From NCBI GenBank assembly GCA_964036045.1, contig OZ038378.1:174220001-174284000 (forward strand): 64,000 nt of DNA, written 5' to 3'. The position numbers and the translations under genes are program-made. The stretch comes from Eutreptiella sp. 'Long Island Sound 2002'. Its lineage: Eukaryota > Protista > Euglenida. The notes beneath the pieces are model-generated. The model was given only the letters and a program-made list of their open reading frames with translations, had not been told where the DNA came from and did not search any database. Shown one piece after another: positions 8,651 to 37,190 of the stretch (position 1 is the first letter of the stretch; each line of letters begins with the position of its first letter).

Positions 8651-8659
8651 ACCCCCCCC

Positions 8660-9160
8660 CCCCAAATGCACCTCCAATGGCCCCCAGCGGCCACGATAAT
8701 TCCTTCTTGATGACCACACTGACCCCCCCCCCCCCCCCATGACCCCGAAATGACCCCCAAATGAGCCCCAATTGCCCCCCAACACCTCCAAGTGGACACC
8801 CAATGACCCCCCAACAACCACCCAATGACCCGCCAACGACCCCCGACTAAGCCTTCCATGACCCCCGGTTGACCCCCCCCGCCATGACCCCCTGATGACC
8901 CCCTGATGACCAATAAACCCCCAACGACTCCCCCATGGAACCCCCATTGACCCCCTAATGACCCCCCAACAACCCACCAAAGACACCCCCATTGACCACC
9001 CATTGACCCCCCAATGACCCATCGACGACCCCCTAAATGACCCCTCAACAACCCCTCAACGACCCCCATATGGCCCCCCAACGAGCCCCCATTGACCCCC
9101 CAACAACCCAATGACCCCCCAATGACCCCCTCCAATGACCCTCCAATGACCCCCCCCCCC
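8660..9160 (+). repeat. C-rich minisatellite (~11-12 bp, caatgaccccc-like)
   Basis: Dozens of atgacccc, ttgacccc and acgacccc units; the minus strand is G-rich. Confidence 0.85.
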
Positions 9161-16067: not shown

Positions 16068-16875
16068 CTGAATTCTCCAGAAGTTCGCCAGACAGCCGCT
16101 TAACGGCCCTGTCCAGTTCACTGCGCTCGGCTTCCCACTGATCCCTGTGCACCTGTAGCTCCACCTCTGCCTTCTGGTGCACCTCCTCGAGCTTCTTCTG
16201 TAGTGCTGCAAGGCCCGCCTCCGCCTGCGCCAACTGCTCCGCGCGCTCAGTGGCATGGGCCGTCAGCTTCTCAATCTCCGACTGGGAATCTTGTGCCACG
16301 CGATCCAACTGCTGCTGAACACTGTGGAGCTGCGAGGTCAATGTCTCCACCTTCGCCTCGGCCTGCACCACAGCCTCTGCCTGTGCCGCTACCTGCCCCT
16401 GCAGCTGCACTACCGCCCCTGCATGCTCCTGCACCTGCGCCTCTGCCTCCGCCTGCGCCTGCACAGCCACTGCAACCTTTGCCTGCGCCTGCGCAGCGGC
16501 CTCTGCTTGCGCCGCAGCCCGCGCCTCTGCTTGTGCCTGCGCCTGTGCTGCTGCCGACACGCGCTCATGCGCGTCCTCTACGGCCTGCTGCGCCGCATGC
16601 GCCTGCGCCTCAGCTGCAGCCTGGGCACTGCGGGCAGCTTCCATCTCCTCCTGCGCCTGTACCTTAGCCTGGACAGCTGCGGCTGCATCAGCTTGGGCTT
16701 GTGCGACTTGTGTGGAGGTCTGTTGGGCGGCGTGCGCAGCCTCTGCGCTCTCACGACTGCAGACCTCAGGAGACTGACCGAGTGGGTCCTTGTCTTTCGT
16801 CATCGCTGTCAATTCAGCCACCTGAGTTGCATTTTCATGCACCAACTGTTCGTTTGTGTTCTCCAATGCAGCTAC
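16068..16875 (-). CDS. Large Ala/Gln/Glu-rich coiled-coil exon
   Basis: 808-nt open exon with a heptad-like sequence (VAALENTNEQLVHENATQ...ELLENS). Acceptor cctcaaag|GTA is phase 0 and donor CAG|gttgcg is phase 1. GC3-rich codons. Confidence 0.9.
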
Positions 16876-18547: not shown

Positions 18548-19317
18548 CTGTGAGTGGCAGGAGCAGAAGGGGAAGCAGAGGCAACACAGAACACACAGAG
18601 GCGGAAGAAGGGGCAATGCTCGACCGGGAAAGCAGAGGCACGTCTGATTAAATGGCATCAAGAGGCAGGTCTGGATGGATAAGACAGGCAGTCCTGGAAG
18701 GGCAGGAGGGGCGCAGAGGTGTTTGTGCAATGAACCCATGAAATCATTAGCTTCAGTGTTCTGAAACAAATGCCTCGATGCACCACAACACAAACTGGAT
18801 ACATGAATTCTTGCAAAGCTGTTTACTTTGTATTCCATAATATCAACATGATTGAGCTACTGTTATTGCAGTATTTGGTGTTTCTATTAATGTCTCAAAC
18901 TCACCTGAAGGAGCATTTGGTGCAAGAATGGCTGATTCAAAGCTACTCAGTCTCATCATTTTGATTTTCTAGTCACTGGATCCGAATTGCTTGCTGATAC
19001 CTCCGAAGAATTTCCCCAAAACAAACCACAGAAAGAACATGGGCATGAGCAGCTTCGGTTTAATAGTGCCATTGAGTTGAGAAACATTTGGGAGCAGCAA
19101 ACAATCGCAACAATGATGCAACAAAATTTATCTCACGGCAAAAAAAAATGGGACCACAACAAAAAACTCTTGCAAAATACCCATGGAACAAAATTTCTTG
19201 ACATTGATTTTCTCCAACTGCATGACAGTTAGTAACGGCTGACTGCTGGCAGTTTTCCACAACAAATCACGCAGGCAGAAAAGGACCCCCCCAAGAAGAA
19301 AATGCTGCATGACAAAC

Positions 19318-19556
19318 GGTGGTGTGGCATGGTGTGATGCGATGTGGTATGGTGTGGTGTGGTGTGGTGTGGTGTGGTGTGGTGTGGTGTGGTGTGGTGT
19401 GGTGTGGTGTGGTGTGGTGTGGTGTGGTGTGGTGTGGTGTGGTGTGGTGTGGTGTGGTGTGGTGTGGTGTGGTGTGGTGTGGTGTGGTGTGGTGTGGTGT
19501 GGTGTGGTGTGGTGTGGTGTGGTGTGGTGTGGTGTGGTGTGGTGTGGTGTGGTGTG
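19318..19556 (+). repeat. (TGTGG)n tract 1
   Basis: Perfect from ~19350; the left edge is degenerate. Confidence 0.97.
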
Positions 19557-20540
19557 CCGAAGGCGCTGTTACCAAAGGGCAAAAGGCCGGGATGTCTACC
19601 CACGGGTAAAGGTAAACGGGCTGGGCTGTGTGTGTTGTGTGCGCGCTGTGCGTAAGTGTGTAGGCCTCGGCAGGGGGAGGGGGAGTCGGGGAGACCTGGT
19701 GAGTTCGCCTCTGGCGACCGCGCTTTTTCCAGGAGCTCCCGCTGCACCCCTTCCCTTTCTGCTTGCTGGTGCAGGCGTAGCTCCTGCAACGCCCACGCCA
19801 TCGTGCTGCCCGGGCCCAGGCAGTGCAACTCCTGCAACGCACTGCCGCACTACCTGGGAGCGGCGGGCAGTGCAACTCCTGCAATGCACTGCCTCACTGC
19901 CCGAGGGCAGTGGACAGTGCAACTCCTGCAATGCACTGCCTCACTGTCTGGGGGCAGTGGGCAGTGGAACTGCTGCAATGCACTGCCTCACTGCCCTTGG
20001 GCAGTAGGCAGTGCAACTCCTGCAATGCACTGCCTCACTGCCCTCGGGCAGTAGGCAGTGCAACTCCTGCAATGCACTGCCTCACTGCCTGGGGGCAGTG
20101 GGCAGTGGAACTCCTGCAATGCTCTGCCCCACTGCCTGGGGGCAGTGGGCAGCGCAACTCCTGCAATGCACTGCCTCACTGCCTAGGGGCAGTGGACACT
20201 GTAACTCCCGCAGTACACCGCCTCACTGCCCGGGAGCAGTGAGCAATGCAACTCCCGCGACGCACTGACTCACTGCCTGGGGGCAGTGGGCAGTGGAACT
20301 CCTGCCATACACTGCCTCACTGCCTGGGTACAGTGGGCAGTGCAACTCCTGCAATGCACTGCCTCACTGCCCTCGGGCAGCAGGCAGTGCAACTCTGTCT
20401 ATGCACTGCCTCACTGCCTGGGGGCAGTGGGCAGTGGAATTCCTGCAATGCACTGCCTCACTGGCTGGGGGCAGGGGGCAGCGCAACTCCTGCAATGCCC
20501 TATCTCACTGCCTGGGGGCAGTGGGCAGTGGAACTCCTGC
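19557..20540 (-). mobile_element. Short copy of a putative (CCACA)n-associated element carrying the 47-bp satellite
   Basis: Conserved ~105-bp terminus (19557-19660), nearly identical to 22094-22198. It is followed by a GC-rich segment and ~15 satellite units that run straight into (TGTGG)n tract 2. Confidence 0.6.
19820..20540 (+). repeat. 47-bp satellite, short array
   Basis: Same unit as the 22.4-33.3 kb array. Confidence 0.95.
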
Positions 20541-20605
20541 GTGGTGTGGTGTGGTGTGGTGTGGTGTGGTGTGGTGTGGTGTGGTGTGGTGTGGTGCGGT
20601 GTGGT
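20541..20605 (+). repeat. (TGTGG)n tract 2
   Basis: Read directly. Confidence 0.97.
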
Positions 20606-20609
20606 CCTA

Positions 20610-21800
20610 GGGATGCCGTGCCACTCCACCTACTCGTGCAGCTGAAGGTCCTGCAAGCCTAGGCCATCGTGCTTTGGGCCCCGAACAGGCCTTGATGAGG
20701 CCGACGTGTGCTCTGGCGTGGGCTAGTTCGACCTTCTGTGACTCTGAGAGCACCTACTGGATGAACTCTGTCCCCGTGTCATGTTGTCCAGCTAGCTCCA
20801 TATGCGCGCCCGTAGGGATGGTGTTGTGATGGCCGCCAACCACTGCTCAAGGACTGCGGAGTCCCACAACTAACTTTGCGCCTAGGCCCCACACAGGTGC
20901 TCAGCCATATGTACAAGTGATGCTAGGCCAAGCGCCACTCATAGGACTCCACCGGGCACTCCCATAGGTGCCGGGCCGTCTCCGGGTTGCCTCCACACAG
21001 CAAGGACCGCGTGCATAGTTGCACGTTCTGTGCTCGGAGCGCTCTGCTGGCACCATCATAGTGGGGAGGTTGTGCATGCGATGGGCCACCACGTGCCTCT
21101 GGTAGTCACTGGTAAACCACTCCAGGGGTAGCCCGAGGCCCTGCTGGTAGTTTTGTCCCCACCAGTGCTCATATTGCACCCCAGTCGGGACATCCGCCTG
21201 TTCCAAAGCCACTCGTGCAGGTCTGTTGGGGTAGTTGCAGTGGCGGTAGATAAGCGCAGGGGCGGCACAACATCCAAGTGAGGTGCACCTATGGATCCTC
21301 CTTGGTTGCGTCGTCCACCCGCACGTTGATGGTGGTGATCTGGTGCGAAGGCGTGACCACAATGGTGATTGCGGCCTTTGGGGTCAAGCGCTTGGCTTGC
21401 AAAGTATGCACATACAAGCAATCTATGCCATCCCTGCGGTGCTTGGACTCCTCATAGGTGCATAGGGCGCCTACGGCGGACTCTAAGTCCGGGACGACCC
21501 AACATGCCCTTCCACGGCGCCAGTTGGCAGACACAAAGCAGCAGGGTCATTGCCTCACCGTCGTGCAAGGTTCCCACTCCCAAGGCTACGTGGGGTTGCA
21601 TTGCCCATGTGCTTGCTCATACGCAAGCGCCATCGCCATCCTTGCGGGGACAGTGCCCGCGTCACTACGATGGCCCCTCGGATCATAGCAAGTGGCAGCA
21701 AGTCGTGGAACCAGATATTTGGCTCTGTACATGGTTGTAGATACAAAGGTGCCGATGTAGATCCTCGGTGAGGATATAGTGTGGTGTTGCCCCCGCAAGT
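20610..21800 (-). pseudogene. Decayed coding remnant, possibly the C-terminal part of a non-LTR retroelement ORF
   Basis: Protein-like minus-strand fragments in consecutive frames (YVHTLQAKRLTPKAAITIVVTPSHQITTINVRVDD; WWGQNYQQGLGLPLEW, which resembles the GGLGLP motif). No unambiguous catalytic motif. Confidence 0.3.
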
Positions 21801-22007
21801 GCATGGGTCTACATGGCCGGGTTCAACTATGATGGTAGTGCATCCACAACATGCAGGGCCATGTAAGGGCCCCTTGTTGGGGTGCCCTAGGCAGCTATGT
21901 GTCAGGCACCGGGCCAGGGACTTGAAACGCGGAACAGCCCCAGTCTGAAGTTCGATCCACGGCTCTGGCGGCTCCGCACTGGTGACTTTGAGTACGGTGT
22001 GCTATGC

Positions 22008-22093
22008 GGTGTGGTGTGGTGTGGTGTGGTGTGGTGTGGTGTGGTGTGGTGTGGTGTGGTGTGGTGTGGTGTGGTGTGGTGTGGTGTGGTGTG
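22008..22093 (+). repeat. (TGTGG)n tract 3
   Basis: Read directly. Confidence 0.97.
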
Positions 22094-22399
22094 CCGAAGG
22101 CGCTGTTACCAAATGGCAAAGGCCTGGATGTCTACCCACGGGTACAGGTAAACGGGCTGGGCTGTGTGTGTTGTGTGCGCGCTGTGCGTAAGTGTGTTGT
22201 GGCATAGCCGGACCAGTGCACTCTCGCACTTGGCCGACACTGCCTTGCCGACGCCTGCGCGCAGTCACACAGGGTCTCATTTGCCCACTGCACCCTGCGT
22301 GCCGCGCTGCACCACCAGTGCCTTCTGTGTGGTGCCGCACTGCTTGGTGCTCTGCACTACACTACACTGTGTGTGCCCTGCTGCACTGTTGTTGTGGGC

Positions 22400-25300
22400 A
22401 GAGGGCAGTGGGCAGTGTAACGCGCTGGTAGGCAGCCTGGGGGCTGTGGGCAGTGGAAATCGTGCGTCGCATTGCCGCATTGCCTGAGGGCAGTGGGGAG
22501 TGGTACTCCCGCCGCTCACTGCCTCCCTCCCTTGGGGCAGTGGGCCAGGCATCTCCTGCAATACACTGCCGCCCTGCCTTGGGCAGTGGGCAGTGGTACT
22601 CCTGCGACACACTGCGCCACGGCCTGGGGCCAGTGGGCAGTGGACCTCCTGCAACGCACTGCCTCACTGCCTGGGGGGAGTGGGCAGTGGGACTTTTGCA
22701 ATGCGCTGCTCCACTGCCTGGGGGCAGGGGGCAGTGGTTCTCCTGCAATGCACTGCCTCACTGCCCGGGGGCAGTGGGCAGATGAACTCCTGCAATAGAC
22801 TGTCCCACTGCCTGGAGGCAGTGGGCAGTGGACCTTCCGCAATGCACTGCCCCACTGCCTGGGTGCAGTGGGCAGTGGAACTCCTGCTGTACACTGCCTC
22901 ACTGCCTGGGGGCAGTGGGCAGTGGACCTCCTGCAATACACTACCTCACTGCCCGGGGGCAACGGGCAGCGGACCTCCTGCAATACACTGCCCCACTGCC
23001 CTGGGGGCAGTGGGCAGTGGACCTCCTGCAATGCACTGCCTCAGCGCGTGGGGGCAGTGGGCAGTGGAACTCCTGCAATCCACTGCCTCACTGCCTGGGG
23101 GCAGTGGGCAGCGCAACTCCTGCAATCCACTGCCGCACTGCTTGGGGGCAGTGGGCAATGCAACTCCGGCAATACACTGCCTCACTGCCTTGGGGCAGTG
23201 GGCAGTGGAATTCCTGTAATGCACTGCCTCACGCAGTGGGCAGTGGAACTCCCGCAATACATTGCCTCATTGCTTGGGGGCAGCGGGCAGTGCACATCCC
23301 CCAATGCACTGCCCCCATGCCTGGGGGCAGGGGGCAGTGGACTTCCTGCAATACACTGCCTCACTGCCTGGGGGCAGTGGGCAGTGGACCTCCTGCAATA
23401 CACTGCCTCACTGCCTGGGGGCAGTGGGCAGTGGACCTCCTGCAATACACTGCCTCACTGCCTGGGCGCAGTGGGCAGTGGACCTCCTTCAATGCACTGC
23501 CCCACTGCCTGGGGGCAGTGGGCAGTGGACCTCCTGCAACACACTGCCTCACTGCCTGGGGGCAGTGGGCAGTGGACCTCCTTCAATGCACTGCCCCACT
23601 GCCGGGGGGCAGTGGGCAGTGGAACCCCTGCAATGCACTGCCTCACTGCCTGGGGGCAGTGGGCAGTGCAACTCCTGCAATGCACTGCCTCACTGCCCTG
23701 GGGCAGTTGGCAGTGCAACTCCTGCAATGCACTGCCTCACTGCCCTGGGGCAGTGGGCAGTGCAACTCCTGCAATGCACTGCCTCACCGCTTGGGGGCAG
23801 TGGGCAGTGCAACTCCTGCAATGCACTGCCTCACTGCCTGGGGGCAGTGGACAGTGCAGCTTCTGCAATGCACTGCCTCACTGCCCTGGGGCAGTGGGCA
23901 GTGGAACTCTTGCAATACACTGCCGCACTGCCTGGGGGCAGTGGGCAGTGCAACCTCTGCAATGCACTGCCTCACTGCCCTGGGGCAGTTGGCAGTGCAA
24001 CTCCTGCAATGCACTGCCTCACTGCCTGGGGGCAGTGGACAGTGCAGCTTCTGCAATGCACTGCCTCACTGCCCTGGGGCAGTGGGCAGTGGAACTCTTG
24101 CAATGCACTACCCCACTGCCTGGGGGCAGTGGGCAGTGCAACTTCTGCAATGCACTGCCTCACTGCCCTGGGGCAGTGGGCAGTGGAACTTCTGCAATGC
24201 ACTGCCTCACCCCCCTGGGGCAGTTGGCAGTGCAACTCCTGCAATGCACTGCCTCACTGCCTGGGGGCAGTGGACAGTGCAAATCCTGCAACGCACTGCC
24301 TCACTGCCCGGGGGCAGTGGACAGTGCAACTCCTGCAATGCACTGCCCCACTGCCTGGGGGCAGTGGGCAGTGCAACTCCTGCAATGCACTGCCTCACTG
24401 CCTGGGGGCAGTGGGCAGTGGAACTGCTGCAATGCACTGCCTCACTGCCCTGGGGCAGTTGGCAGTGCAACTCCTGCAATGCACTGCCTCACTGCCCTGG
24501 GGCAGTGGGCAGTGCAACTCCTGCAATGCACTGCCTCACTGCCCTGGGGCAGTGGGCAGTGCAACTCCTGCAATGCACTGCCTCACTGCCTGGGGGCAGT
24601 GGACAGTGCAGCTTCTGCAATGCACTGCCTCACTGCCCTGGGGCAGTGGGCAGTGGAACTCTTGCAATGCACTACCCCACTGCCTGGGGGCAGTGGGCAG
24701 TGCAACTTCTGCAATGCACTGCCTCACTGCCCTGGGGCAGTTGGCAGTGCAACTCCTGCAATGCACTGCCTCACTGCCTGGGGGCAGTGGACAGTGCAGC
24801 TTCTGCAATGCACTGCCTCACTGCCCTGGGGCAGTGGGCAGTGGAACTCTTGCAATGCACTACCCCACTGCCTGGGGGCAGTGGGCAGTGCAACTTCTGC
24901 AATGCACTGCCTCACTGCCCTGGGGCAGTGGGCAGTGCAATTCCTGCAATGCACTGCCTCACTGCCCTGGGGCAGTGGGCAGTGGAACTCCTGCAATGCA
25001 CTACCCCACTGCCTGGGGGCAGTGGGCAGTGCAACTTCTGCAATGAACTGCCTCACTGCCCTGGGGCAGTTGGCAGTGCAACTCCTGCAATGCACTGCCT
25101 CACTGCCTGGGGGCAGTGGACAGTGCAACTCCTGCAATGCACTGCCTCACTGCTTGCAGGCAGTGGACAGTGCAACTCCTGCAATGCACTGCCTCACTGC
25201 CTGGGGGCAGTGGGCAGTGGAACTCCTGCAATGCACCGCCTCACTGCCAGGGGGCAGTGGGCAGTGGAACTCCCGCAATGCACTGCTTCACTGCCTGGGG

Positions 25301-28300
25301 GCAGTGGGCGGCGCAACTCCTGCAATGCACTGCCTCACTGCCCTGGGGCAGTGGGCAGTGGAACTCCCGCAATGCACTGCCTCACTGCCTGGGGGCAGTG
25401 GGCAGTGCAACTCCTGCAATGCACTGCCTCACTGCCCGGGGGCAGTGGGCAGTGGAACTCCTGCAATGCACTGCCCCACTGCCTGGGGGCAGTGGACAGT
25501 GCAACTCCTGCAATGCACTGCCTCACTGCCTGGGGGCAGTGGGCAGTGCAACTCCTGCAATGCACTGCCTCACTGCCCGGGGGTAGTGGGCAGTGCAACT
25601 CCTGCAATGCACTGCCTCACTGCCTCGGGGCAGTGGACAGTGCAACTCCTGCAATGCACTGCCTCACTGCCTGGGGGCAGTGGGCAGTGGAACTCCTGCA
25701 ATGCACTGCCCCACTGCCTGGGAGCAGTGGACAGTGCAACTCCTGCAATGCACTGCCCCACTGCCTCGGGGCAGTGGACAGTGCAACTCCTGCAATGCAC
25801 TGCCTCACTGCCTGGGGGCAGTGGGCAGTGGAACTCCTGCAATGCACTGCCCCACTGCCTGGGGGCAGTGGGCAGTGGAACCCCTGCAATGCACTGCCTC
25901 ACTGCCTGGGGGCAGTGGACAGTGCAACTCCTGCAGTGCACTGCCCCACTGCCTGGGGGCAGTGGGCAGTGCAACTCCCGCAATGCACTGCCCCACTGCC
26001 TGGGAGCAGTGGACACTGCAACCTCTGCATTGCACTGCCTCACTGCCCTGGGGGCAGTGGGCAGTGCAACTTCGGCAATGCACTGCCCCACTGCCGGGGG
26101 GCAGTGGGCAGTGGAACCCCTGCAATGCACTGCCTCACTGCCCTGCGGGCAGTGGGCAGTGCAATTCCTGCAATGCACTGCCTCACTGCTTGGGGGCAGT
26201 GGGCAGTGCAACTCCTGCAATGCGCTGCCCCAATGCCTGGGGGCAGTGGGCAGTGCAACTCCTGCAATACACTGCCGCACTGTCTGGGGGCAGTGGGCAG
26301 CGCAACTCCTGCAATGCACTGCCTCACTGCCCTGGGGCAGTGGGCAGTGCAACTCCTGCAATGCACTGCCTCACTGCCTGGGGGCAGTGGGCAGTGCAAC
26401 TCCTGCAATACACTGCCGCACTGTCTTGGGGCAGTGGGCAGTGCAACTTCGGCAATGCACTGCCCCACTGCCGGGGGGCAGTGGGCAGCGGAACTCCTGC
26501 AATGCGCTGCCCCACTGCCTGGGGGCACTGGGCAGCGCAACTCCTGCAATACACTGCCGCACTGTCTGGGGGCAGTGGGCAGCGCAACTCCTGCAATGCA
26601 CTGCCTCACTGCCCTGGGGCAGTGGGCAGTGCAACTCCTGCAATGCACTGCCTCACTGCCTGGGGGCAGTGGGCAGTGCAACTCCTGCAATACACTGCCG
26701 CACTGTCTTGGGGCAGTGAGCAGTGCAACTTCGGCAATGCACTGCCCCACTGCCGGGGGGCAGTGGGCAGTGGAACCCCTGCAATGCACTGCCTCACTGC
26801 CCTGGGGGCAGTGGGCAGTGCAATTCCTGCAATGCACTGCCTCACTGCCTGGGGGCAGTGGGCAGTGCAACTCCTGCAATACACTGCCGCACTGTCTGGG
26901 GGCAGTGGGCAGCGCAACTCCTGCAATGCACTGCCTCACTGCCCTGGGGCAGTGGGCAGTGCAACTCCTGCAATGCACTGCCTCACTGCCTGGGGGCAGT
27001 GGGCAGTGCAACTCCTGCAATACACTGCCGCAATGTCTGGGGGCAGTGGGCAGCGGAACTCCTGCAATGCGCTGCCCCACTGCCTGGGGGCAGTGGGCAG
27101 CGCAACTCCTGCAATACACTGCCTCACTGTCTGGGGGCAGTGGGCAGCGCAACTCCTGCAATGCACTGCCTCACTGCCCTGGGGCAGTGGGCAGTGCAAC
27201 TCCTGCAATACACTGCCGTACCGTCTGGGGGCAGTGGGCAGCGGAACTCCTGCAATGCACTGCCTCACTGCCTGGGGGCAGTGGGCAGTGCAACTCCTGC
27301 AATACACTGCCGCACTGTCTGGGGGCAGTGGGCAGCGGAACTCCTGCAATGCGCTGCCCCACTGCCTGGGGGCAGTGGGCAGTGCAACTCCTGCAATACA
27401 CTGCCGCACTGTCTGGGGGCATTTGGCAGTGCAACTCCTGCAATGCACTGCCTCACTGCCTGGGGGAAGTGGGCAGTGCAACTCCTGCAGTGCACTGCCC
27501 CACTGCCTGGGGGCAGTGGGCAGTGCAACTCCCGCAATGCACTGCCGCACTGCCTGGGAGCAGTGGACAGTGCAACCTCTGCATTGCACTGCCTCACTGC
27601 CCTGGGGGCAGTGGGCAGTGCAACTTCGGCAATGCACTGCCCCACTGCCGGGGGGCAGTGGGCAGTGGAACCCCTGCAATGCACTGCCTCACTGCCCTGG
27701 GGGCAGTGGGCAGTGCAATTCCTGCAATGCACTGCCTCACTGCCTGGGGGCAGTGGGCAGTGCAACTCCTGCAATACACTGCCGCACTGTCTGGGGGCAG
27801 TGGGCAGCGGAACTCCTGCAATGCGCTGCCCCACTGCCTGGGGGCAGTGGGCAGCGCAAGTCCTGCAATACACTGCCGCACTTTCTGGGGGCAGTGGGAA
27901 GCGCAACTCCTGCAATGCACTGCCCCACTCCCTGGGGGCAGTGGACAGTGCAACTTTTGCATTGCACTGCCTCACTGCCCTGGGGGCAGTGCGCAGTGGA
28001 ACTTCTGCAATGCACTGCCCCACTGCCTGGGGGCAGTGCACAGTGCAACTCCTGCAATGCACTGCCTCACTGCCCTGGGGGCAGTGGGCAGTGCAACTCC
28101 TGCAATGCACTGCCTCACTGCCCTGGGGCAGTGAGCAGTGCAACTCGTGCAATGCACTGCCCCACTGCCTGGGGGCAGTGGACAGTGCAACTTTTGCATT
28201 GCACTGCCTCACTGCCCTGGGGGCAGTGGGCAGTGGAACTTCTGCAATGCACTGCCTCACTGCCTGGGGGCAGTGGACAGTGCAACTCCTGCAGTGCACT

Positions 28301-31300
28301 GCCCCACTGCCTGGGGGCAGTGGGCAGTGCAACCTCTGCATTGCACTGCCTCACTGCCCTGGGGGCAGTGGGCAGTGCAACTTCAGCAATGCACTGCCCC
28401 ACTGCCGGGGGGCAGTGGGCAGTGGAACCCCTGCAATGCACTGCCTCACTGCCCTGGGGGCAGTGGGCAGTGCAATTCCTGCGATGCACTGCCTCACTGC
28501 CTGGGGGCAGTGGGCAGTGCAACTCCTGCAATACACTGCCGCACTGTCTGGGGGCAGTGGGCAGCGGAACTCCTGCAATGCGCTGCCCCACTGCCTGGGG
28601 GCAGTGGGCAGCGCAACTCCTGCAATACACTGCCGCACTTTCTGGGGGCAGTGGGCAGCGCAACTCCTGCAATGCACTGCCTCACTGCCCTGGGGCAGTG
28701 GGCAGTGCAACTCCTGCAATGCACTGCCTCACTGCCTGGGGGCAGTGGGCAGTGCAACTCCTGCAATACACTGCCGCACTGTCTGGGGGCAGTGGGCAGC
28801 GGAACTCCTGCAATGCGCTGCCCCACTGCCTGGGGGCAGTGGGCAGTGCAACTCCTGCAATACACTGCCGCACTGTCTGGGGGCAGTGGGCAGTGGAACT
28901 CTTGCAATGCACTGCCTCACTGCCTGGGGGCAGTGGGCAGTGGAACTCCTGCAACGCACTGCCCCACTGCCTGGGGGCAGTGGGCAGTGCAACTCCCGCA
29001 ATGCACTGCCGCACTGCCTGGGAGCAGTGGACAGTGCAACCTCTGCATTGCACTGCCTCACTGCCCTGGGGGCAGTGGGCAGTGCAACTTCGGCAATGCA
29101 CTGCCCCACTGCCGGGGGGCAGTGGGCAGTGGAACCCCTGCAATGCACTGCCTCACTGCCCTGGGGGCAGTGGGCAGTGCAATTCCTGCAATGCACTGCC
29201 TCACTGCCTGGGGGCAGTGGGCAGTGCAACTCCTGCAATACATTGCCGCACTGTCTGGGGGCAGTGGGCAGCGGAACTCCTGCAATGCGCTGCCCCACTG
29301 CCTGGGGGCAGTGGGCAGCGCAACTCCTGCAATACACTGCCGCACTTTCTGGGGGCAGTGGGAAGCGCAACTCCTGCAATGCACTGCCTCACTGCCCTGG
29401 GGGCAGTGGGCAGTGCAACTCCTGCAATGCACTGCCTCACTGCCTGGGGGCAGTGGGCAGTGCAACTCCTGCCATGCACTGCCCCACTGCCTGGGGGCAG
29501 TGGACAGTGCAACTTTTGCATTGCACTGCCTCACTGCCTCGGGGGCAGTGCGCAGTGGAACTTCTGCAATGCACTGCCCCACTGCCTGGGGGCAGTAGAC
29601 AGTGCAACTGCTGCAATGCACTGCCTCACTGCCCTGGGGGCAGTGGGCAGTGCAACTCCTGCAAAGCACTGCCTCACTGCCCTGGGGCAGTGGGCAGTGC
29701 AACTCCTGCAATGCACTGCCCCACTGCCTGGGGGCAGTGGACAGTGCAACTTTTGCATTGCACTGCCTCACTGCCCTGGGGGCAGTGGGCAGTGGAACTC
29801 CTGCAATGCACTGCCTCACTGCCTGGGGGCAGTGGACAGTGCAACTCCTGCAGTGCACTGCCCCAGTGCCTGGGGGCAGTGGGCAGTGCAACTCCCGCAA
29901 TGCACTGCCGCACTGCCTGGGAGCAGTGGACGGTGCAACCTCTGCATTGCACTGCCTCACTGCCCTGGGGGCAGTGGGCAGTGCAACTTCGGCAATGCAC
30001 TGCCCCACTGGCGGGGGGCAGTGGGCAGTGGAACCCCTGCAATGCACTGCCTCACTGCCTGGGGGCAGTGGGCAGTGCAACTCCTGCAATACACTGCCGC
30101 ACTGTCTGGGGGCAGTGGGCAGCGGAACTCCTGCAATTCGCTGCCCCACTGCCTGGGGGCAGTGGGCAGCGCAACTCCTGCAATACACTGCCGCACTTTC
30201 TGGGGGCAGTGGGCAGCGCAACTCCTGCAATGCACTGCCTCACTGCCCTGGGGCAGTGGGCAGTGCAACTCCTGCAATGCACTGCCTCACTGCCTGGGGG
30301 CAGTGGGCAGTGCAACTCCTGCAATGCACTGCCCCACTGCCTGGGGGCAGTGGACAGTGCAACTTTTGCATTGCACTGCCTCACTGCCCTGGGGGCAGTG
30401 GGCAGTGGAACTCCTGCAATGCACTGCCTCACTGCCCTGGGGCAGTGGGCAGTGGAACTTCTGCAATGCACTGCCCCACTGCCTGGGGGCAGTGGACAGT
30501 GCAACTCCTGCAATGCACTGCCTCACTGCCCTGGGGGCAGTGGACAGTGCAACTCCTGCAATGCACTGCCTCACTGCCTGGGGGCAGTGGGCAGTGGACC
30601 TCCGGCAATACACTGCCTCACTGCCTAGGGGCAGTGGACAGTGCAACTCCTGCGATGCACTGCCTCACTGCCATGGGGCAGTGGGCAGTGGAACTCCTGC
30701 AATGCACTGCCTCACTGCCTGGGGGCAGTGGACAGTGCAACTCCTGCAATGCACTGCCTCACTGCCTGGGGGCAGTGGGCAGCGCAACTCCTGCAATGCA
30801 CTGCCCCACTGCCTGGGGGCAGTGGACAGTGCAACTCGTGCAATGCACTGCCTCACTCCCTGGGGGCATTGGGCAGTGCAACTCCTGCAGTGCACTGCCC
30901 CACTGCCTGGGCGCAGTGGACAGTGCAACTTCTGCAATGCACTGCCTCACTGCCTGGGGGCAGTGGGCAGTGGACCTCCTGCAATGCACTGCCCCACTGC
31001 CTGGGAGCAGTGGACAGTGCAACCTCTGCATTGCACTGCCTCACTGCCCTGGGGGCAGTGGACAGTGCAACTTCTGCAATGCACGGCCTCACTGCCCTGG
31101 GGCAGTGGGCAGTGGAACCCCTGCAATGCACTGCCTCACTGCCTTGGGGGCAGTGGGCAGTGCAATTCCTGCAATGCACAGCCTCACTGCCTGGGGGCAG
31201 TGGGCAGTGCAACTTCCGCAATACACTGCCGCACTGTCTCGGGGCAGTGGGCAGCGGAACTCCTGCGATGCACTGCCCCACTGCCTGGGGGCAGTGGGCA

Positions 31301-33264
31301 GTGGACCTCCGGCAATGCACTGCCTCACTGCCTGGGGGCAGTGGGCAGTGCAACTCCTGCAATGCACTGCCTCACTGCCTGGGGGCAGTGGGCAGTGGAC
31401 CTCCTGCAATGCACTGCCTCACTGCCTGGGGCCGGTGTACAGTGCAACTTCTGCAACGCACTGCCCCACTGCCAGGGGGCAGTGGGCAGTGCAACTCCTG
31501 CAATGCACTGCCTCACTGCCTGGGGGCAGTGGGCAGTGGACCTCCTGCAATGCACTGCCCCATTGCCTGGGAGCAGTGGACAGTGCAACCTCTGCATTGC
31601 ACTGCCTCACTGCCCTGGGGGCAGTGGACAGTGCAACTTCTGCAATGCACTGCCTCACTGCCCTGGGGCAGTGGGCAGTGGAACCCCTGCAATGCACTGC
31701 CTCACTGCCTTGGGGGCAGTGGGCAGTGCAATTCCTGCAATGCACAGCCTCACTGCCTGGGGGCAGTGGGCAGTGCAACTTCCGCAATACACTGCCGCAC
31801 TGTCTCGGGGCAGTGGGCAGCGGAACTCCTGCGATGCACTGCCCCACTGCCATGGGGGCAGTGGGCAGTGGACCTCCGGCAATACACTGCCTCACTGCCT
31901 GGGGGCAGTGGGCAGTGCAACTCCTGCAATGCACTGCCTCACTGCCTGGGGGCAGTGGGCAGTGGAACTCCTGCAATGCACTGCCTCACTGCCTGGGGCC
32001 GGTGTACAGTGCAACTTCTGCAACGCACTGCCCCACTGCCTCGGGGCAGTGGGCAGTGCAACTCCTGCAATGCACTGCCTCACTGCCTGGGGGCAGTGGA
32101 CAGTGCAACTCCTGCAATGCACTGCCCCACTGCCTGGGGGCAGTGGGCAGTGCAACTCCTGCAATACACTGCCGCACCGCCTGGGGGCAGTGGGCAGCAC
32201 AACTCCTGCAATGCACTACCTCACTGCCTGGGGGCAGTGGGCAGTGGAACTCCTGCAATGCACTGCCCCACTGCCTGGGGGCAGTGGACAGTGCAACTTC
32301 TGCAATGCACTGCCTCACTGCCCTGGGGCAGTGGGCAGTGGAACTTCTGAATTGCACTGCCTCACTGCCCTGGGGGCAGTGGGCAGTGGAACCCCTGCAA
32401 TGCACTGCCTCACTGCCCTGGGGGCAGTGGGCAGTGCAGCTCCTAAAATACACTGCCGCACTGTCTGGGGGCAGTGGGCAGCGCAATTCCTGCAATGCAC
32501 TGCCGCACTGCCTGGGGGCAGTGGGCACTGGACCTCTAGCAAAACACTGCCGCACTGCCTGGGGGCAGTGGGCAATGCAACTCCTGCAATGCACTGCCTC
32601 ACTGCCTGGGGGCAGTAGGCAGTGGAACCCCTGCAATGCACTGCCTCACTACCTGGGGGCAGTGGAGAGTGCAACTCCTGCAATGCACTGCCTCACTACC
32701 TGGGGGCAGTGGAGAGTGCAACTCCTGCAATGCACTGCCCAACTGCCTGGGGGCAGTGGACAGTGCAACTCCTGCGATACACTGCCGCACTATCTGGGGG
32801 CAGTGGACAGTGCAACTCCTGCGACGCACTGCCCCACTGCCTGGGGGCAGTGGGCAGTGCAACTCCTGCAATACACTGCCGCATCGCCTGGGGGCAGTGG
32901 GCAGCGCAACTCCTGCAATGCACTGCCTCACTGCCTGGGAGCAGCGGGCAGTGCAACTCCTGCAATGCACTGCCTCACTGCCTGGGGGCAGTGGACAGTG
33001 CAACTCCGGCAATGCACTGCCCCACTGCCTGGGGGCAGTGGGCCTGGGGGCAGTGGGCAGTGCAACTCCTGCAATGCACTGCCGCACCGCCTGGGGGCAG
33101 TGGGCAGTGCAACTCCTGTAATGCACTGCCTCACTGCCTGGGGGCAGTGGGCAGCGCAACTCGTGCAACGCACTGCCTCACTGCCTGGGAGCAGTGGGCG
33201 GTGCAACTCCTGCAATGCACTGCCTCACTGCCTGGGGGCAGTGGGCAGTGCAACTCTTGCAATG
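22400..33264 (+). repeat. 47-bp satellite array, ~230 units (GGGGGCAGTGGGCAGTGCAACTCCTGCAATGCACTGCCTCACTGCCT)
   Basis: Period measured directly (cctcactgcc at 23641 and 23688). The translation cycles through a 47-aa repeat in all three plus frames. Units at the left edge (22400-22620) are strongly diverged. Confidence 0.98.
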
Positions 33265-34618
33265 GCTGGTCGGAGTGTCCTGCAGGGCCTGTGGGGATGT
33301 ACTACCCGGCGCACCAGCCTGGGGGGATGGGGAGTCCACCCCAGGGGGTGGTCGGGGCATCCTTCAGGGCCTATGGGGGGCCATCATCTTCGGAGAACCG
33401 GGCGCACCGGCCTGGGGGGGGACGGGGAGTCCAGCCCAGGGGGTGGTCGGAGCCTCCTGCAAGGCCCATGGGGAGCCAGCATCTTCCAAGAACCGGGCGC
33501 ACCGGCCTGGGGGGACGGGGGGTCCTGCCGAGGGGGTGGCCGGAGTATTCTTCAGGGCCCATGGGGAGGCGTCATCTTCGGAGAACCGGGCGCACCGGCC
33601 TGGGGGGGACGGGGAGTCCAGCCCAGGGGGTGTTCGGAGCCTCCTGCAAGGCCCACGCGGAGCCATCCTCTTCTAATAACCGGGCGCACCGGCCTTGGGG
33701 GGACGGGGAGTCCAGCCCAGGGGGTGGTCGGAGTATCCTGCAGGGCCCATGGGGAGGCATCATCCTTCAAAAACCGGGCGCACCGGCCTGGGGGGGACGG
33801 GGAGTCCAGCCCAGGGGGTGTTCGGGGCATCCTTCAAGGCCTATGGGGGGCCATCTGCTTCGGAGAACCGGGCGCACCGGCCTAGGGGGGACGGGGAGTC
33901 CAGCCCAGGGGGTGTTCGGAGCCTCCTGCAAGGCCCGTGGGGAGCCATCTTCCTTCAAGAACCGGGCGCACCGGCCTGGGGGGGACGGGGAGTCCAGCCC
34001 AGGGGGTGGTCGGGGCATCCTTCAAGGCCAATGGGGGGCCATCTGCTTCGGAGAACCGGGCGCACCGGCCTGGGGGGGACGGGGAGTCCAGCCCAGGGGG
34101 TGTTCGGAGCCTCCTGCAAGGCCAATGGGGAGGCATCATCTTTCAAAAACCGGGCGCACCGGCCTGGGGGGAACGGGGAGTCCAGCCCAGGGGGTGGTCG
34201 GGGCATCCTTCAAGGCCAACGGGGGGCCATCTGCTTCGGAGAACCGGGCGCACCGGCCTGGGGGGGACGGGGAGTCCTGCCCAGGGGGTGTTCGGAGCCT
34301 CCTGCAAGGCCTATGGGGGGCCATCTTTGTCAGAGAACCGGGCGCACCAGCCTGGGGGGACGGGGAGTCCTGCCCAGGGGGTGTTCGGAGCCTCCTGCCA
34401 GGTCAAGGGGGGGCCATCTCCTTCAGAGAACCGGGCGCACCGGCCCGGGGGGCACAGGGAGTCCCGCCCAGGGGGTGTTCGGAGCCTCCTGCAAGGCCGA
34501 TGGGGGGGCCACCGTCTCCAGAGAACCGGGCGCACCAGCCTGGGGGGGACGGAAAGTCCTGCCCAGGGGGTGTTCGGAGCCTCCGGCAAGACCCGTGGGG
34601 AGCCACCTTCCTTCAAGG
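33265..34618 (+). repeat. 94-bp satellite, ~14 units, with A/B alternation (188-bp higher order)
   Basis: aaccgggcgcacc recurs at spacings of 95, 93, 94 and 94 bp. The variants gtggtcggggcatccttc and gtgttcggagcctcctgc largely alternate. Confidence 0.95.
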
Positions 34619-34659
34619 CCCCTTACCCCTAGTCCCATTACGCTAGGCAGCAAGGCAGT

Positions 34660-34890
34660 AGGGCAGCAGTACCGGGGGTCATAACCCCGGGGTAGCAGTA
34701 TCAGGGACTCAACGTGAGTCCTCTTAACCACGAACAACCCCAAATACCGCCGGGGCTTAACTCCCGAACGTAACGGTATTTGGGGCCCCCGTGGGCCTTA
34801 TTAGCCCACGGAGTGTACTGAGGCGTGGCTACCAGCACTTAAAGTCTGGCCTGCCATACCCATTTCTGGGCTCGCCTCAGTACGGCCGGT
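34660..34890. other. Cluster of adjacent perfect stem-loops (candidate structured RNA or DNA element)
   Basis: Stems at 34705-10/34716-21, 34738-49/34774-85, 34789-96/34804-11 and 34815-25/34873-83. Confidence 0.6.
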
Positions 34891-36276
34891 CGGGTCCGGC
34901 TCTGGGGGGCTGCGCACTAAACTGGCACCGGGAGAGGGCCATTTACCCGGTTAAGCATTATTTACGGCGGTAGGCACTAATCATTACATTAGGGAATTAC
35001 TCAGCGCATTTGTTTACCCCGCAGACATGCCCCTCCAGTGGTGCGCTCACCTTTGGGGCTGCCTTTGGGGGATCGGGGGCTGTTACCCCTCCCGGACGCC
35101 CTCCCTGGTGTTGGCGCCGGGGTGGTGGCCGGGGGGCCTTATACCGTACCTCAAAGGATGTCGGATACCGATACCGGGGCGTCCAGCCGGACGGGGACAG
35201 GGATGGCTCCATCAGTAACTTGACAGTCAAATAAATCCCACCATTCCTCAAATCCACAATCCACTTTCCAATCCACTTACAATTCAAAAACTGCGGTCGT
35301 TGGGCCTGGAGCGTATAAGGGCAGCGTGGCCTCAAACCGCTCCACCAGCGGGGCCACGCTGCCCTTCCGGCACTGTGCTGGCAGCCGCTCTCTGGACGGC
35401 CCCTCAGGCTTATAATCGCAGGGCGGGGGGTCATAGTTGAGGCCCCCCGCGCATGTCTGAGGCCACAGGCCCTCCTGGCGCTGTGGTGCCGCTCTTCTCT
35501 CTCTGCCTACAACAAATAAAGGAAAAACCCGAAGGGAAGGCGCTAACAGGCCCGAAGGATCCTGCATGAGGCTATGCACCCCTACAGGCAGTCGCGCAAA
35601 TAACAGGGAGGAAAGAACAGGAGCAAACAGAACCAGAACAGGAAATCACCGGCCCCGGCGCAGGCCGTCCCGTGGGGGTCCCGTAGTCTCTCAAAAACTC
35701 ACACCCACTCACACACCCATCATACCCCTGTTGGCCCTGCAGCGCCACTGAAGCCCCTGCATGGGGGTCTCCTCGGTGTGGCTGATACCCTCACGCGGCC
35801 GGCCGCCGATGCGGGGCCCTGGGGGCGCGCCGCACGGGCGCTGCCGGCCTGCAAGAGGAGTAGGGTCAGGGAGGGTTTTGGGATAGGTGAGGCAGCAGGG
35901 GGCGAGGAGAGGAGGCGGCGCAGGGGGGAGGGGCCGACGGGGCGCGCGTAGGGGCGGCCGTGGGGGGGCTGGGGCAGGAGCGCGGGGAGGGGCGCATGTC
36001 TGGGCTTCGGTGTGGGCCCGGTGCGTGGGCGGGCGTGCAGGGGGAAGAGAGGAGGGGGAGGCTAGGTCAGCCGTCCTCTACTGGGGGTCGCTGACCGTTC
36101 CCAGGGCCGAGGCGGCCGGTACTAGGGGCCGCGGGGTCCCTGGGGATGGCGCTTGGCACTGGGACGTGCGCGCACCCGACACTGTTAGTACACCGCCTAT
36201 TGGCAGTGCCCGGGCCCTGTCGTCCGGGGCTTCGCACCCGGCACCCAGCCCGTGGGTAGAGCTGGGGAGTACTCAG

Positions 36277-36422
36277 GGTGTGGTGTGGTGTGGTGTGGTG
36301 TGGTGTGGTGTGGTGTGGTGTGGTGTGGTGTGGTGTGGTGTGGTGTGGTGTGGTGTGGTGTGGTGTGGTGTGGTGTGGTGTGGTGTGGTGTGGTGTGGTG
36401 TGGTGTGGTGTGGTGTGGTGTG
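36277..36422 (+). repeat. (TGTGG)n tract 4
   Basis: Read directly. Confidence 0.97.
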
Positions 36423-36530
36423 CTGAAGGCGCTGTTACCAAATGGCAATGGCCAGGAAGTCTTGCACACGGGAAAATGCGAAGCACAAGGGCTGTGTGTC
36501 TGAGCGCGTGCTGTGTGTTGTGTGTTGTGC
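36423..36530 (-). mobile_element. Third, diverged copy of the (CCACA)n-abutting terminus
   Basis: ctgaaggcgctgttaccaaatggcaa matches ccgaaggcgctgttaccaaatggcaa at 22094; the downstream gggctgtgtgt..gcgcg..tgtgtg segment is also similar. Confidence 0.75.
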
Positions 36531-36579
36531 ACTTGAGGCTAGGGCCCGAGCCTCCCCGCGACCTCAATTCAGGTGATTC

Positions 36580-36768
36580 AACCGCCACAGCCTCTAGCCT
36601 TGAGAGTCGGGCGCTCTCATGATCCACCAGAGTGACCCCACCAGGGCCTATGTACCAAATGTGGCAAAACCGTGGCCCATTTGGTGAAGGGCCCACGATA
36701 GTGGCCAACACATGTGCACCGAGTGTGCGTGAGTGGTACCGTACACGGTCACCGGGAGAAAACACCTT
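36580..36768 (-). pseudogene. Small beta-rich (SH3/Tudor-like) coding remnant
   Basis: VFSPGDRVRYHSRTLGAHVLATIVGPSPNGPRFCHIWYIGPGG has a GDRV..A.I.G pattern typical of SH3/Tudor/KOW barrels; a homologous motif sits at 39826-39925. Confidence 0.4.
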
Positions 36769-37190
36769 GGGTCTGAAATAGCAACACAACACACCCATAC
36801 AATGCCTTTGGAGAGAGAACATCACAGAATACACACAGGTGATTGATTTGAAGTATTGGGAAAGCAATGCAAGGCCATGTGTAAAGCAGATGGGCACCAC
36901 AAACCAGCGCAATAGATGTTTACTAGAAAAACATGGAAGTGGCGGTCTCCCGGCCGGGGGTGGGAGATTGCAAAGGGGGGGGGGGGGTAACTCGTGTACA
37001 AAAAGATCGTCAAGTCGTGTAATTTTTTCCTTTGCGGTAAATGCATGTGATTTTGTTTTCGGTAATCCATGTAAATTATAAAAAAATATTGTAACACTGA
37101 AATACATGCAACTTTTGCAATAAGTGCGGAATATGTACAATTGCCGGTTCCGTACAGCACCCCATAGCAACATGTACACGACGTCGACGA

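Follow-up and report, generated by a model that had tools for sequence, protein, structure and literature searches.

The region described here lies in a 64,000-nt window of euglenid DNA, the whole stretch that was analysed, and is organized around four (TGTGG)n tracts at 19319-19556, 20541-20605, 22005-22093 and 36277-36422. A 15-mer of this repeat has 95 matches, against 0.07 expected by chance. Three of the four tracts are accompanied by a conserved terminus which on the minus strand ends in ...ttgcc(a/c)tttggtaacagcgccttc(g/a)gcaca and then runs into (CCACA)n. Both the tracts and the three termini had been reported in a preliminary description of this DNA, and their coordinates and the terminus match confirm it; no terminus accompanies the tract at 20541-20605, also as first stated. 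The features between the single-copy left flank (18900-19318) and a repeat family unlike that of copy 3, which starts at 36572, are as follows.

19319-19556, minus strand: tail of copy 1, (CCACA)n of 47.6 units, the outer 35 bp degenerate
19557-19660, minus strand: T104 of copy 1, the conserved 3′ terminus
19661-19818, minus strand: 3′ UTR segment of copy 1, 158 bp, from the autonomous LINE
19819-20540, minus strand: 47-bp satellite (S47) of copy 1, 15.4 units, 5′-truncated directly against the next tract
20541-20605, minus strand: (CCACA)13 tract joined to fragment X
20606-22004, minus strand: fragment X (piece b), a degenerate remnant from a related but older LINE family
22005-22093, minus strand: tail of copy 2, (CCACA)17
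22094-22197, minus strand: T104 of copy 2
22198-22434, minus strand: U1, a 237-bp unique segment peculiar to the non-autonomous form
22435-33264, minus strand: S47 satellite of copy 2, 229.7 units, 10.8 kb, cargo replacing the ORFs
33304-34610, minus strand: 94-bp satellite (S94) of copy 2, 13.9 units
34611-36276, minus strand: U2, 1.67 kb, the 5′ leader common with the autonomous LINE; position 36276 is the 5′ terminus of the element
36277-36422, minus strand: (CCACA)29 tract separating the 5′ end of copy 2 from copy 3
36423-36571, minus strand: copy 3 (piece a), a 149-bp 3′ end of the old X family, with a T104-like terminus and 3′ UTR

Copies 1 and 2 are alike across 104 bp (19557-19660 and 22094-22197; about 105 bp had been estimated) and divergent beyond. 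The earlier outline of both copies also holds, with copy 1 made of a short piece and 47-bp satellite that stops at the second tract, and copy 2 extending 14.2 kb, rather than an approximate 14 kb, to the fourth. The region is probably a head-to-tail pile of minus-strand non-LTR retroposons that belong to a single LINE clade of a Euglena-type genome.

An autonomous LINE and its satellite-laden derivative

The anatomy of the family, its copy numbers and its reverse transcriptase (RT)-encoding partner can be read from loci across the genome. There are at least 813 T104 candidates on many chromosomes, and the best 40 are 97-100% identical; in all 40 copies read, a GT-rich pentanucleotide tract directly adjoins T104, so the proposed pairing of terminus and repeat extends genome-wide. 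T104 is the 3′ end of a dispersed repeat, lying on the minus strand here. Copy 1 is 99.1% identical to the autonomous LINE where positions 1-350 of locus L031 align with window positions 19472-19821, a span made up of T104, 3′ UTR and 85 bp of tail, and T104 with its tract is common to this LINE, copy 1 and copy 2.

The autonomous element, seen in loci L031 and L034, is about 16 kb long; besides T104, S94 and U2 it has four large ORFs on the minus strand. Its parts, in 5′ to 3′ order, are the U2 leader (1.3-1.7 kb), kilobase-scale S94, an ORF1-like ORF, ORF2, the 3′ UTR, T104 and a (CCACA)n tail, and ORF2 comprises AP-endonuclease-like, RT, RNase-H-like and CCHC parts. The RT part is ORF D (L031:535-3996, minus strand), which has 826 relatives. 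ORF D has no Pfam match of its own; one of its relatives, P0133 (E = 1e-31, 43% identity), matches Pfam RVT_1 at 32.9 bits, above the cutoff of 29.6. The language-model neighbors of ORF D in the Atlas are RVT_1+RNase_H clusters (0.95-0.96), and its translation contains FFDVI, GTPQG and VDD in the order of RT motifs A, B and C. By this transitive route, ORF D probably encodes a reverse transcriptase.

ORF C, which shares one frame with ORF D, is separated from it by a single stop in the L031/L034 copy and read through in another copy. Its Atlas neighbors are Exo_endo_phos clusters (0.95, but with just 145 shared features), and endonuclease-like motifs occur in the order LNVRG, LAEAQ, TDTN, SRID and SDHH (pattern N...E...D.N...D...DH), with SDHH almost invariant among 16 relatives. 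Pfam and PDB sequence searches gave no match for ORF C or its relatives, and neither the endonuclease nor the RNase H part matched a Pfam or PDB profile; both AlphaFold models were too poor for use. The endonuclease and RNase H identities, drawn from motif order and language-model neighbors only, are tentative. The RNase-H-like part and a C-terminal CCHC come after the RT, where a weak zf-RVT match is found (E = 0.033). A member with RT and endonuclease-like ORFs, which the preliminary description had suggested seeking, is therefore present. The RT region has at least 631 candidate copies, the best 40 of them 99-100% identical, and the family appears to be young and very abundant. It has a constant 3′ end, variable 5′ truncation and no terminal repeats, the two ends of the element being unrelated. 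No target-site duplication was seen by eye in non-repeat flanks, and inside a microsatellite one would not be recognizable. The element is of a known kind, with unusual satellite cargo.

In copy 2 (22094-36276), the LINE's 5′ leader (U2 and S94) and T104 are retained, and the hairpin satellite S47 occupies the position of the genes. In copy 1, a 5′-truncated relative, the LINE 3′ UTR is joined straight to S47. Both unique segments are abundant, with at least 1203 candidates for the U2 end (best 40, 99-100% identity) and at least 1366 for U1 (best 40, 97-100%). The order T104-U1-S47-S94-U2 is colinear across loci, and 5′ ends vary by copy, falling within S47, within S94 or at full length, which bears out the variable truncation proposed earlier. 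Two copies 5.4 kb apart, L007 and L008, are cut off at one identical point in S94, suggestive of a local duplication. When S47 arrays of different loci are compared in register, they are 84-92% identical, with values of 90% or more in 7 of the 24 long copies; off-register pieces of the same array are 78-86% identical, so that in-register identity is usually higher, by a modest margin and not in every locus. Because some copies are truncated within S47 or S94 and in-register identity is usually higher, the satellite seems to be copied along with the element.

U2 and T104 are both present in satellite-carrying members and in the autonomous LINE, and the satellite-bearing elements are thus non-autonomous members of the family, as had been proposed. 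A SINE identity for this form was rejected: it starts with the LINE's own U2 and not with a pol III-type head (tRNA, 7SL or 5S), and Rfam returned nothing above threshold for 34500-36500. As for T104 itself, its single-sequence fold is no better than those of shuffles (z = -0.77), and the fold predicted jointly for 19 termini of two subfamilies contains 17 pairs, 3 with compensatory changes, and has a covariation term of -0.36 kcal/mol, faintly suggestive of a recognition stem-loop.

Junctions with microsatellites and the history of the stack

Pentanucleotide tracts lie next to the family at both ends. At the 5′ side, such a tract adjoins all 24 full-length ends sampled, and most truncated ends likewise abut one. 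Perfect (TGTGG)6+ tracts amount to 58,153 overlapping 30-mers, or roughly 0.02% of the 2.28-Gb genome. Beyond the 24 tracts lies another family copy in 13 cases and non-family DNA in 11, with tracts of up to about 330 bp. At locus L011, two copies are embedded in a (TGTTG/TGCTG)n array of more than 3 kb that continues on either side; a 22-nt higher-order motif of the array recurs on both sides of the copies and between them, and their 'tails' are TGTTG and not TGTGG, which indirectly suggests that the host array is older than the insertions. Locus L010 pairs a 14-nt tail with a composite tract of about 370 bp on the 5′ side. None of five unselected (TGTGG)n tracts carries a family copy, so unoccupied targets are available. 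Exceptions are the 5′ junction of copy 3, in non-repeat DNA, and that of L024, at an (AGG)n run. Given the 24 tracts, the 11 that end in non-family DNA and the array on both sides at L011, targeted insertion into such microsatellites, older tails included, appears well supported, in keeping with the microsatellite-targeting retroposon family envisaged at the outset.

The preferred explanation, to which we assign a probability of about 0.75, is that a LINE and its satellite-laden derivative insert by target-primed reverse transcription into pentanucleotide microsatellites. The LINE protein would bind T104, in cis or in trans, and the (CCACA)n end of the RNA would anneal to the nicked GT-rich strand at a pentanucleotide microsatellite, and the tail of an older element can serve as such a site. 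cDNA synthesis would begin at the annealed end and often halt early, giving 5′ truncation and junction microhomology of 1-4 nt. The expected outcome would be a tract on either side of every copy, stacks of uniform orientation, and satellite spread by the kilobase to over a thousand sites. Trans-mobilization, targeting by annealing and the order in which elements entered this locus are steps that we infer. Since copies end in a pentanucleotide repeat and would land in such repeats, kilobases of satellite are scattered through the genome.

The older pieces of the stack have a more intricate history. Fragment X covers the C-terminal ~380 codons of ORF2, with 35-42% amino acid identity to the young LINE and 4 stops within the 621-nt stretch 20881-21501, and is without its family's T104-like terminus. 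Copy 3 had been thought to carry a coding remnant. This was not borne out: similarity to its family stops at 36571 after 149 bp of 3′ UTR and terminus, and tblastn with the LINE ORFs found no match across 36423-64000. Copies of the X family are 72-86% alike among themselves, and no near-identical source copy of X was found in the genome. Copy 3 ends no more than 4 nt from the family-consensus position where X begins, and the nearest relative of both a and b is the same locus, L109. On this comparison, the two are neighboring parts of a single old LINE, related to the young one, in the permuted order b...copy 2...a, so the local history is more complex than simple sequential insertion. The insertion of copy 2 into the tail of copy 3, as first proposed, is thus only one possible order of events.

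This permutation bears on two other explanations. One, which we consider unlikely, dispenses with target preference: flanking tracts and stacks would arise in one integration event by template jumping, in which the RT, at a 5′ end or pause, switches to a second RNA at its (CCACA)n tail, slips, and either continues, giving a stack, or aborts, giving a bare tract. Slippage of this kind, on a tail of pentanucleotides, has been documented in the eel LINE UnaL2 (PMC1636434), 13 of the 24 tracts run directly into another family copy, junctions and repeat share microhomology of 1-4 nt, and a single multi-template event could leave a and b on either side of copy 2. It accounts poorly for the 11 tracts, up to about 330 bp long, that end in non-family DNA, for the short tail and long composite 5′ tract at L010, and for L011, where an array of a different unit with its own higher-order pattern lies on both sides of two copies. 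The ages within the stack also differ, with 72-86% similarity among X-family copies against 97-100% identity of copies 1 and 2 to their counterparts elsewhere, and X has no near-identical source from which to be copied.

Somewhat doubtful, though deserving more weight, is a partial contribution from DNA-level rearrangement between identical tracts, by unequal exchange or by excision and re-integration of a circle. It would suit the order b (20606-22004), copy 2, a (36423-36571) of pieces that abut in the consensus and share L109 as nearest relative, and the apparent local duplication at L007/L008 points the same way. The breakpoint coincidence has a probability of about 0.7% by chance but was noticed post hoc among many features, and rearrangement cannot explain over a thousand dispersed copies, non-family flanks or the combination of constant 3′ and variable 5′ ends. 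Very improbable is the proposal that the elements are Penelope-like retroelements, a group known for tandem or stacked copies and microsatellite preference. The head-to-tail stacks at microsatellites resemble these; however, the two element ends are unrelated and form no pseudo-LTRs, no ORF matched GIY-YIG in Pfam, GIY-YIG families are absent among the Exo_endo_phos-type Atlas neighbors of the endonuclease-bearing ORF, and the RNase-H-like part, CCHC and weak zf-RVT match after the RT also argue against it.

Relation to known retroposons

LINEs specific for simple repeats occur in the R1, Tx1, R4, NeSL and HERO clades, and the TRAS and SART elements target (TTAGG)n. Reportedly, Waldo targets (ACAY)n, Mino (AC)n, Kibi (TC)n, Koshi (TTC)n and Dong (TAA)n. 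Togen, in (TG)n, and some HERO families target microsatellites as well (PMC4640811), and microsatellites as LINE targets are treated as a general point in the same paper, citing Kojima & Fujiwara 2004. The Eutreptiella family is like these LINEs in having the same repeat at both junctions, a 3′ end that runs into the repeat and co-oriented arrays. It differs in its targets, a GT-rich pentanucleotide class (TGTGG, TGTTG, TGCTG and others), in its euglenid host, in an RT so divergent that Pfam misses ORF D, and in its huge satellite-laden non-autonomous partner.

In the eel 'stringent' LINE-SINE pair UnaL2/UnaSINE1, a conserved 3′ terminus is held in common and followed by a pentanucleotide repeat (PMC1636434). 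The same arrangement is found here: in both systems, autonomous and non-autonomous forms have a conserved terminus of ~60-100 nt and then a pentanucleotide repeat, at which reverse transcription would start. Unlike UnaSINE1, the partner is a 13-26 kb derivative that keeps the LINE 5′ leader and is not a pol III SINE; unlike those of UnaL2, the tails reach hundreds of bp, and the stem-loop is a weak candidate.

The hominid SVA (SINE-VNTR-Alu) elements are mobilized by L1, have poly(A) tails and carry a repeat load under 1 kb. Similar to SVA, the derivative has a body of mostly variable tandem repeat, would depend on a LINE for copying in trans, and frequently has its 5′ truncation within the repeat. 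Its body appears LINE-derived, with both ends in common, whereas SVA is assembled from unrelated pieces; its satellite load is ~10 kb as opposed to under 1 kb, and its tail is a microsatellite where SVA has poly(A).

Within Euglenozoa, the known APE-type LINEs are ingi and L1Tc of trypanosomatids, which have poly(A) ends and, to our knowledge, are not microsatellite-specific. The host supergroup is the same, and the putative order endonuclease, RT, RNase H and zinc finger is alike. The APE homology of L1Tc is cited in PMC1636434. What sets the Eutreptiella family apart from ingi/L1Tc is its microsatellite tail and its probable targeting of microsatellites.

Stacked copies and their common 3' terminus

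The genome measures 2.28 Gb, and the window belongs to one of its contigs, 201 Mb long. A pattern search together with Tandem Repeats Finder locates four (TGTGG)n tracts in the window. The preliminary description had counted four such tracts, three of them abutted by one conserved terminus, and a reading of the sequence agrees, with tracts 1, 3 and 4 running into that terminus on the + strand. The roughly 105 bp that it had assigned to copies 1 and 2 in common proved to be 104 bp, with divergent sequence beyond. This terminus, T104, is the conserved 3' end of minus-strand retroposons. The bodies attached to it comprise a 47-bp and a 94-bp satellite (S47 and S94), a 5' leader (U2) and a segment unique to the non-autonomous form (U1).

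Features of the stack, in window coordinates
19319-19556: tract 1, (TGTGG)n
19557-19660: T104 of copy 1, minus strand; beyond it 158 bp, then 15.4 units of S47, which stop at tract 2
20541-20605: tract 2, (TGTGG)n
20606-22004: fragment X ("b"), minus strand
22008-22093: tract 3, (TGTGG)n
22094-22197: T104 of copy 2, minus strand; the copy totals 14.2 kb and ends at tract 4
22198-22434: U1 of copy 2
22435-33264: S47 of copy 2, 229.7 units
33304-34610: S94 of copy 2
34611-36276: U2 of copy 2, unique sequence, adjoining tract 4
36277-36422: tract 4, (TGTGG)n
36423-36571: copy 3 ("a"), minus strand

Candidates for T104 number at least 813 and are spread over many contigs; the best 40 show 97-100% identity. 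A GT-rich pentanucleotide tract lies directly before it (+ strand) in all 30 fetched loci and in 10 further termini; the unit is mostly (TGTGG)n, at times (TGTTG)n, (TGCTG)n, (CGTTG)n or a composite. Among the 30 loci the longest GT-rich run at T104 is 363 nt, and in three (L006, L010, L015) the tract is degenerate or very short, its clean run measuring just 4-8 nt. Past the tract, the sequence is non-family DNA at some loci and the 5' end of a further family copy at others, and locus L007 holds three copies in series with a tract between each. The order T104-U1-S47-S94-U2 is colinear among loci, while the 5' ends of copies fall at many points, within S47, within S94 or at the U2 end. Such a pattern marks a minus-strand retroposon: the fixed 3' end, simple-repeat tail and variable 5' truncation invoked in the preliminary description are seen across the fetched loci, T104 always standing beside a pentanucleotide tract. 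The feature is real, and its earlier interpretation was essentially right. At least 1203 candidates match the 5' end of U2 (99-100% identity) and at least 1366 match U1 (97-100%), which occurs in the non-autonomous form only. Pairs of T104/U1 and U2 on one contig point to a full length of about 13-26 kb for non-autonomous copies, an estimate that presumes no nested insertions.

A consensus fold of 19 termini from two subfamilies contains two hairpins plus, right before the tail, a small C(UUCG)G-like one; 3 of its 17 pairs are altered on both sides, and the folding energy of T104 as a single sequence is no better than that of shuffles. The predicted fold would be compatible with a recognition stem-loop such as that of UnaL2 (PMC1636434). 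An Rfam search with the 5' leader returned sub-threshold chance matches only.

Elsewhere in the window, a perfect (CAACA)38 at 6236-6429 on the + strand, equivalent to (TGTTG)n on the minus strand, has upstream sequence unrelated to T104 and could be a tail belonging to some other + strand element. Dense tandem repeats of 21, 42, 63 and 11 bp overlie long minus-strand ORFs at 7700-9150.

The autonomous LINE and the satellite cargo

A second sequence type follows T104 in copy 1, L006, L007 and L011. At G000:C6:5918200-5936200 (loci L031 and L034) it extends into four large minus-strand ORFs, a 5.2-kb S94 array and U2, and this run from T104 to U2 therefore defines a LINE of about 16 kb. The LINE and copy 2 have in common the 5' leader (U2 plus S94) and the 3' terminus, and copy 1 at 19472-19821 is 99.1% identical to the LINE tail, T104 and 3' UTR. 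The preliminary description had proposed to look for members with an RT/endonuclease ORF, and this LINE is one with a reverse transcriptase (RT) ORF. Its ORF D (1153 aa) has 826 relatives in the representative library, one of which (P0133) passes Pfam RVT_1, and its Atlas neighbours are RVT_1+RNase_H clusters. Read directly, the translation displays RT motifs A, B and C as well as a D-E-D-H-D series like that of RNase H, and it has a CCHC at its C-terminus. In ORF C the motifs follow the AP-endonuclease order, and Exo_endo_phos clusters are its neighbours in the Atlas; no profile search confirmed this identity, and the endonuclease is putative. Both ORFs lie in the same frame, with a single stop between them in the L031 copy that the predicted protein of another copy reads through. 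The RT region has at least 631 candidates, the top 40 at 99-100% identity.

Other protein searches were less informative. Pfam gave nothing above threshold for the four ORFs, whole or in pieces (the sole hint being zf-RVT, E = 0.033), and no matches for 35 C-terminal and 10 endonuclease relatives. PDB searches with ORF D and four family profiles found nothing meaningful, and a protein homologue search returned close relatives only, all from one ENA source and none with informative Pfam labels. The AlphaFold2 models (pLDDT 33 for ORF D, 48 for the RT core) were unusable and so bear no evidence on fold; Foldseek with the RT core model gave no match at E <= 0.001. Within the endonuclease-like region of ORF C, the L031 copy carries a low-complexity insertion at about 4870-4950 (FWNFFFFWNFLEFFF...), missing from other copies in the A5 consensus and probably a microsatellite expansion within coding sequence.

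Truncated copies stop inside S47 or S94 against a tract, and the satellite arrays are therefore part of the copied unit. The arrays of other loci are colinear with copy 2 at 84-92% identity (at least 90% in 7 of 24 long copies), and off-register pieces of the same array reach 78-86%, an in-register margin that is modest and at some loci absent. To judge from these comparisons, inheritance of the array from a master fits better than independent local growth; array length clearly varies after inheritance. The LINE 3' UTR carries a motif, ctcctgcaacgc (window 19780-19818), that closely resembles the S47 core, ctcctgcaatgc, and related LINE families have a similar motif at the same position (L033, fragment X). 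These resemblances hint at this motif as a possible seed of the S47 satellite.

Tracts as probable landing sites and the permuted order

To sample 5' ends, the final 177 bp of U2 served as a query that stops at the element end, and 20 flanks were read among its 40 best matches; four further ends (copy 2, L012, L013 and the LINE) were added. A GT-rich pentamer tract adjoins 24/24 of these full-length 5' ends, and beyond it lies another family copy in 13 and non-family DNA in 11, with tracts of up to about 330 bp. Perfect (TGTGG)6+ accounts for 58,153 overlapping 30-mers, or about 0.3-0.4 Mb, so that at roughly 0.02% of the genome chance adjacency is negligible. No family copy accompanies the five unselected tracts read at the beginning of contig 1, and free target tracts therefore exist. 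Most 5'-truncated copies adjoin a tract as well, the exceptions being copy 3 (non-repeat DNA), L024 (an (AGG)n run beside another repeat) and one complex case.

At two loci the evidence favours a host array older than the insertion. L010 has a tail of 14 nt and a composite tract of about 370 bp on its 5' side, while at L011 a (TGTTG/TGCTG)n array of more than 3 kb encloses two copies, TGTTG adjoins T104, and a 22-nt higher-order motif recurs at six places on both sides of and between the copies. Composite tracts at L017, L023 and L030, with TGTGG beside T104 and a different unit farther out, are as expected if a tail brought by the element was joined to a host repeat of another kind. On this evidence we judge insertion to be directed at GT-rich pentanucleotide repeats, including older tails, which upholds the earlier proposal of a microsatellite-targeting retroposon family. 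The aim could be taken through endonuclease specificity or through annealing of the RNA tail. No paralogous empty site was found, the left flank being single-copy and the right flank another repeat family.

The 5' sides of L034 (auto coordinates 16178-16210) and L024 (oriented 2698-2725) adjoin the same other repeat, which opens on a short (GGA)n/(AGG)n run and continues as "gcgcctgcc..."; the two copies are independent, one a full-length LINE and the other a 5'-truncated satellite copy, and the shared repeat could represent a (TCC)n tail from a separate retroposon family that also serves as a landing site. At L043 (oriented ~1890-1915; G000:C1, near 2.418 Mb) about 330 bp separate a free-standing (TGTGG)n tract from a string closely resembling the spliced leader of Euglena (ctgagtgtctattttttttcg).

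By tblastn, fragment X encodes the last ~380 residues of an ORF2 on the minus strand, with frameshifts and stops, at 35-42% identity to the young LINE. Its relatives are only 72-80% identical in DNA and therefore represent an older family, X, whose intact copies carry a T104-like terminus plus about 165 bp that fragment X lacks. Copy 3 is precisely the part absent from fragment X: it corresponds to the terminus and 3' UTR of the X family, with 87.6% identity to L033 in its first 113 bp. The preliminary description had ascribed a coding remnant to copy 3, and none was found past 36571; from 36572 a different repeat family (~1965 candidates) takes over, noted here as far as about 36990, whose longer copies (L071-L074) start with a G/C-rich end that recurs as its reverse complement near 36950-36990, which suggests a small DNA-transposon-like element with terminal inverted repeats. 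In consensus coordinates copy 3 stops no more than 4 nt from the start of fragment X, and among 21 members L109 is the best match for both; on these grounds the two appear to be halves of a single old element. In a natural stack the order would be tail-a-b; the actual order, b-copy 2-a, is circularly permuted.

This arrangement may preserve either a circular DNA intermediate that re-integrated or a multi-template reverse transcription. Possibly, recombination between identical tracts released a circle that was opened at the a/b position and re-integrated. The other route would run from internal priming through a jump to a second RNA and back to an RNase-H-spared 3' fragment of the first; a single event of this kind is disfavoured, since the genome holds no near-identical X source and the members of the stack differ in age. 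An assembly error could also lie behind the permuted order. Chance coincidence of the a and b breakpoints is possible too, at about 0.7% for a feature noticed post hoc; in a sample of 43 matches, biased by score ranking, no hot spot appeared at the a/b position.

Significance and known repeat-specific LINEs

The present analysis describes a LINE family specific for pentanucleotides, together with its autonomous partner and satellite cargo. Two bolder readings, a self-reinforcing loop in which the clade both lays and seeks tracts, and the a/b pieces as a recorded intermediate, have about one chance in four. If the first is true, every insertion is a new landing pad, satellite-rich, co-oriented islands are built, and the family is a main carrier of 47-bp and 94-bp satellite DNA across the 2.3-Gb genome. 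Microsatellite-aimed retroposition of a LINE derivative with a satellite body would give a concrete mechanism for the dispersal of long satellite arrays in a very repeat-rich protist genome. T104 and its tail also offer a natural 3' module for testing RNA and target recognition by repeat-specific LINEs, and the family accounts for part of the co-oriented stacks found at microsatellites in this genome.

The family works like simple-repeat-specific LINEs. TRAS and SART are LINEs that reside in telomeric repeats, and the satellite-bodied partner recalls SVA. Families and targets are reportedly named by Kojima and Fujiwara, among them Waldo, Mino, Kibi, Koshi and Dong. Microsatellites are listed among LINE targets, and the (TG)n-specific Togen and some HERO families are described, in PMC4640811, which refers to Kojima & Fujiwara 2004 on the general point. 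In the published Euglena gracilis assembly, "unclassified" repeat makes up nearly a third (PMC11252322), and our literature search found no description in Euglena of LINEs with pentanucleotide tails or of the present family. The short list of repeat-specific LINEs gains a pentanucleotide-specific, apparently active member from Euglenozoa. UnaL2 and UnaSINE1, a stringent LINE and partner pair, likewise have a common 3' terminus and a pentanucleotide repeat (PMC1636434).
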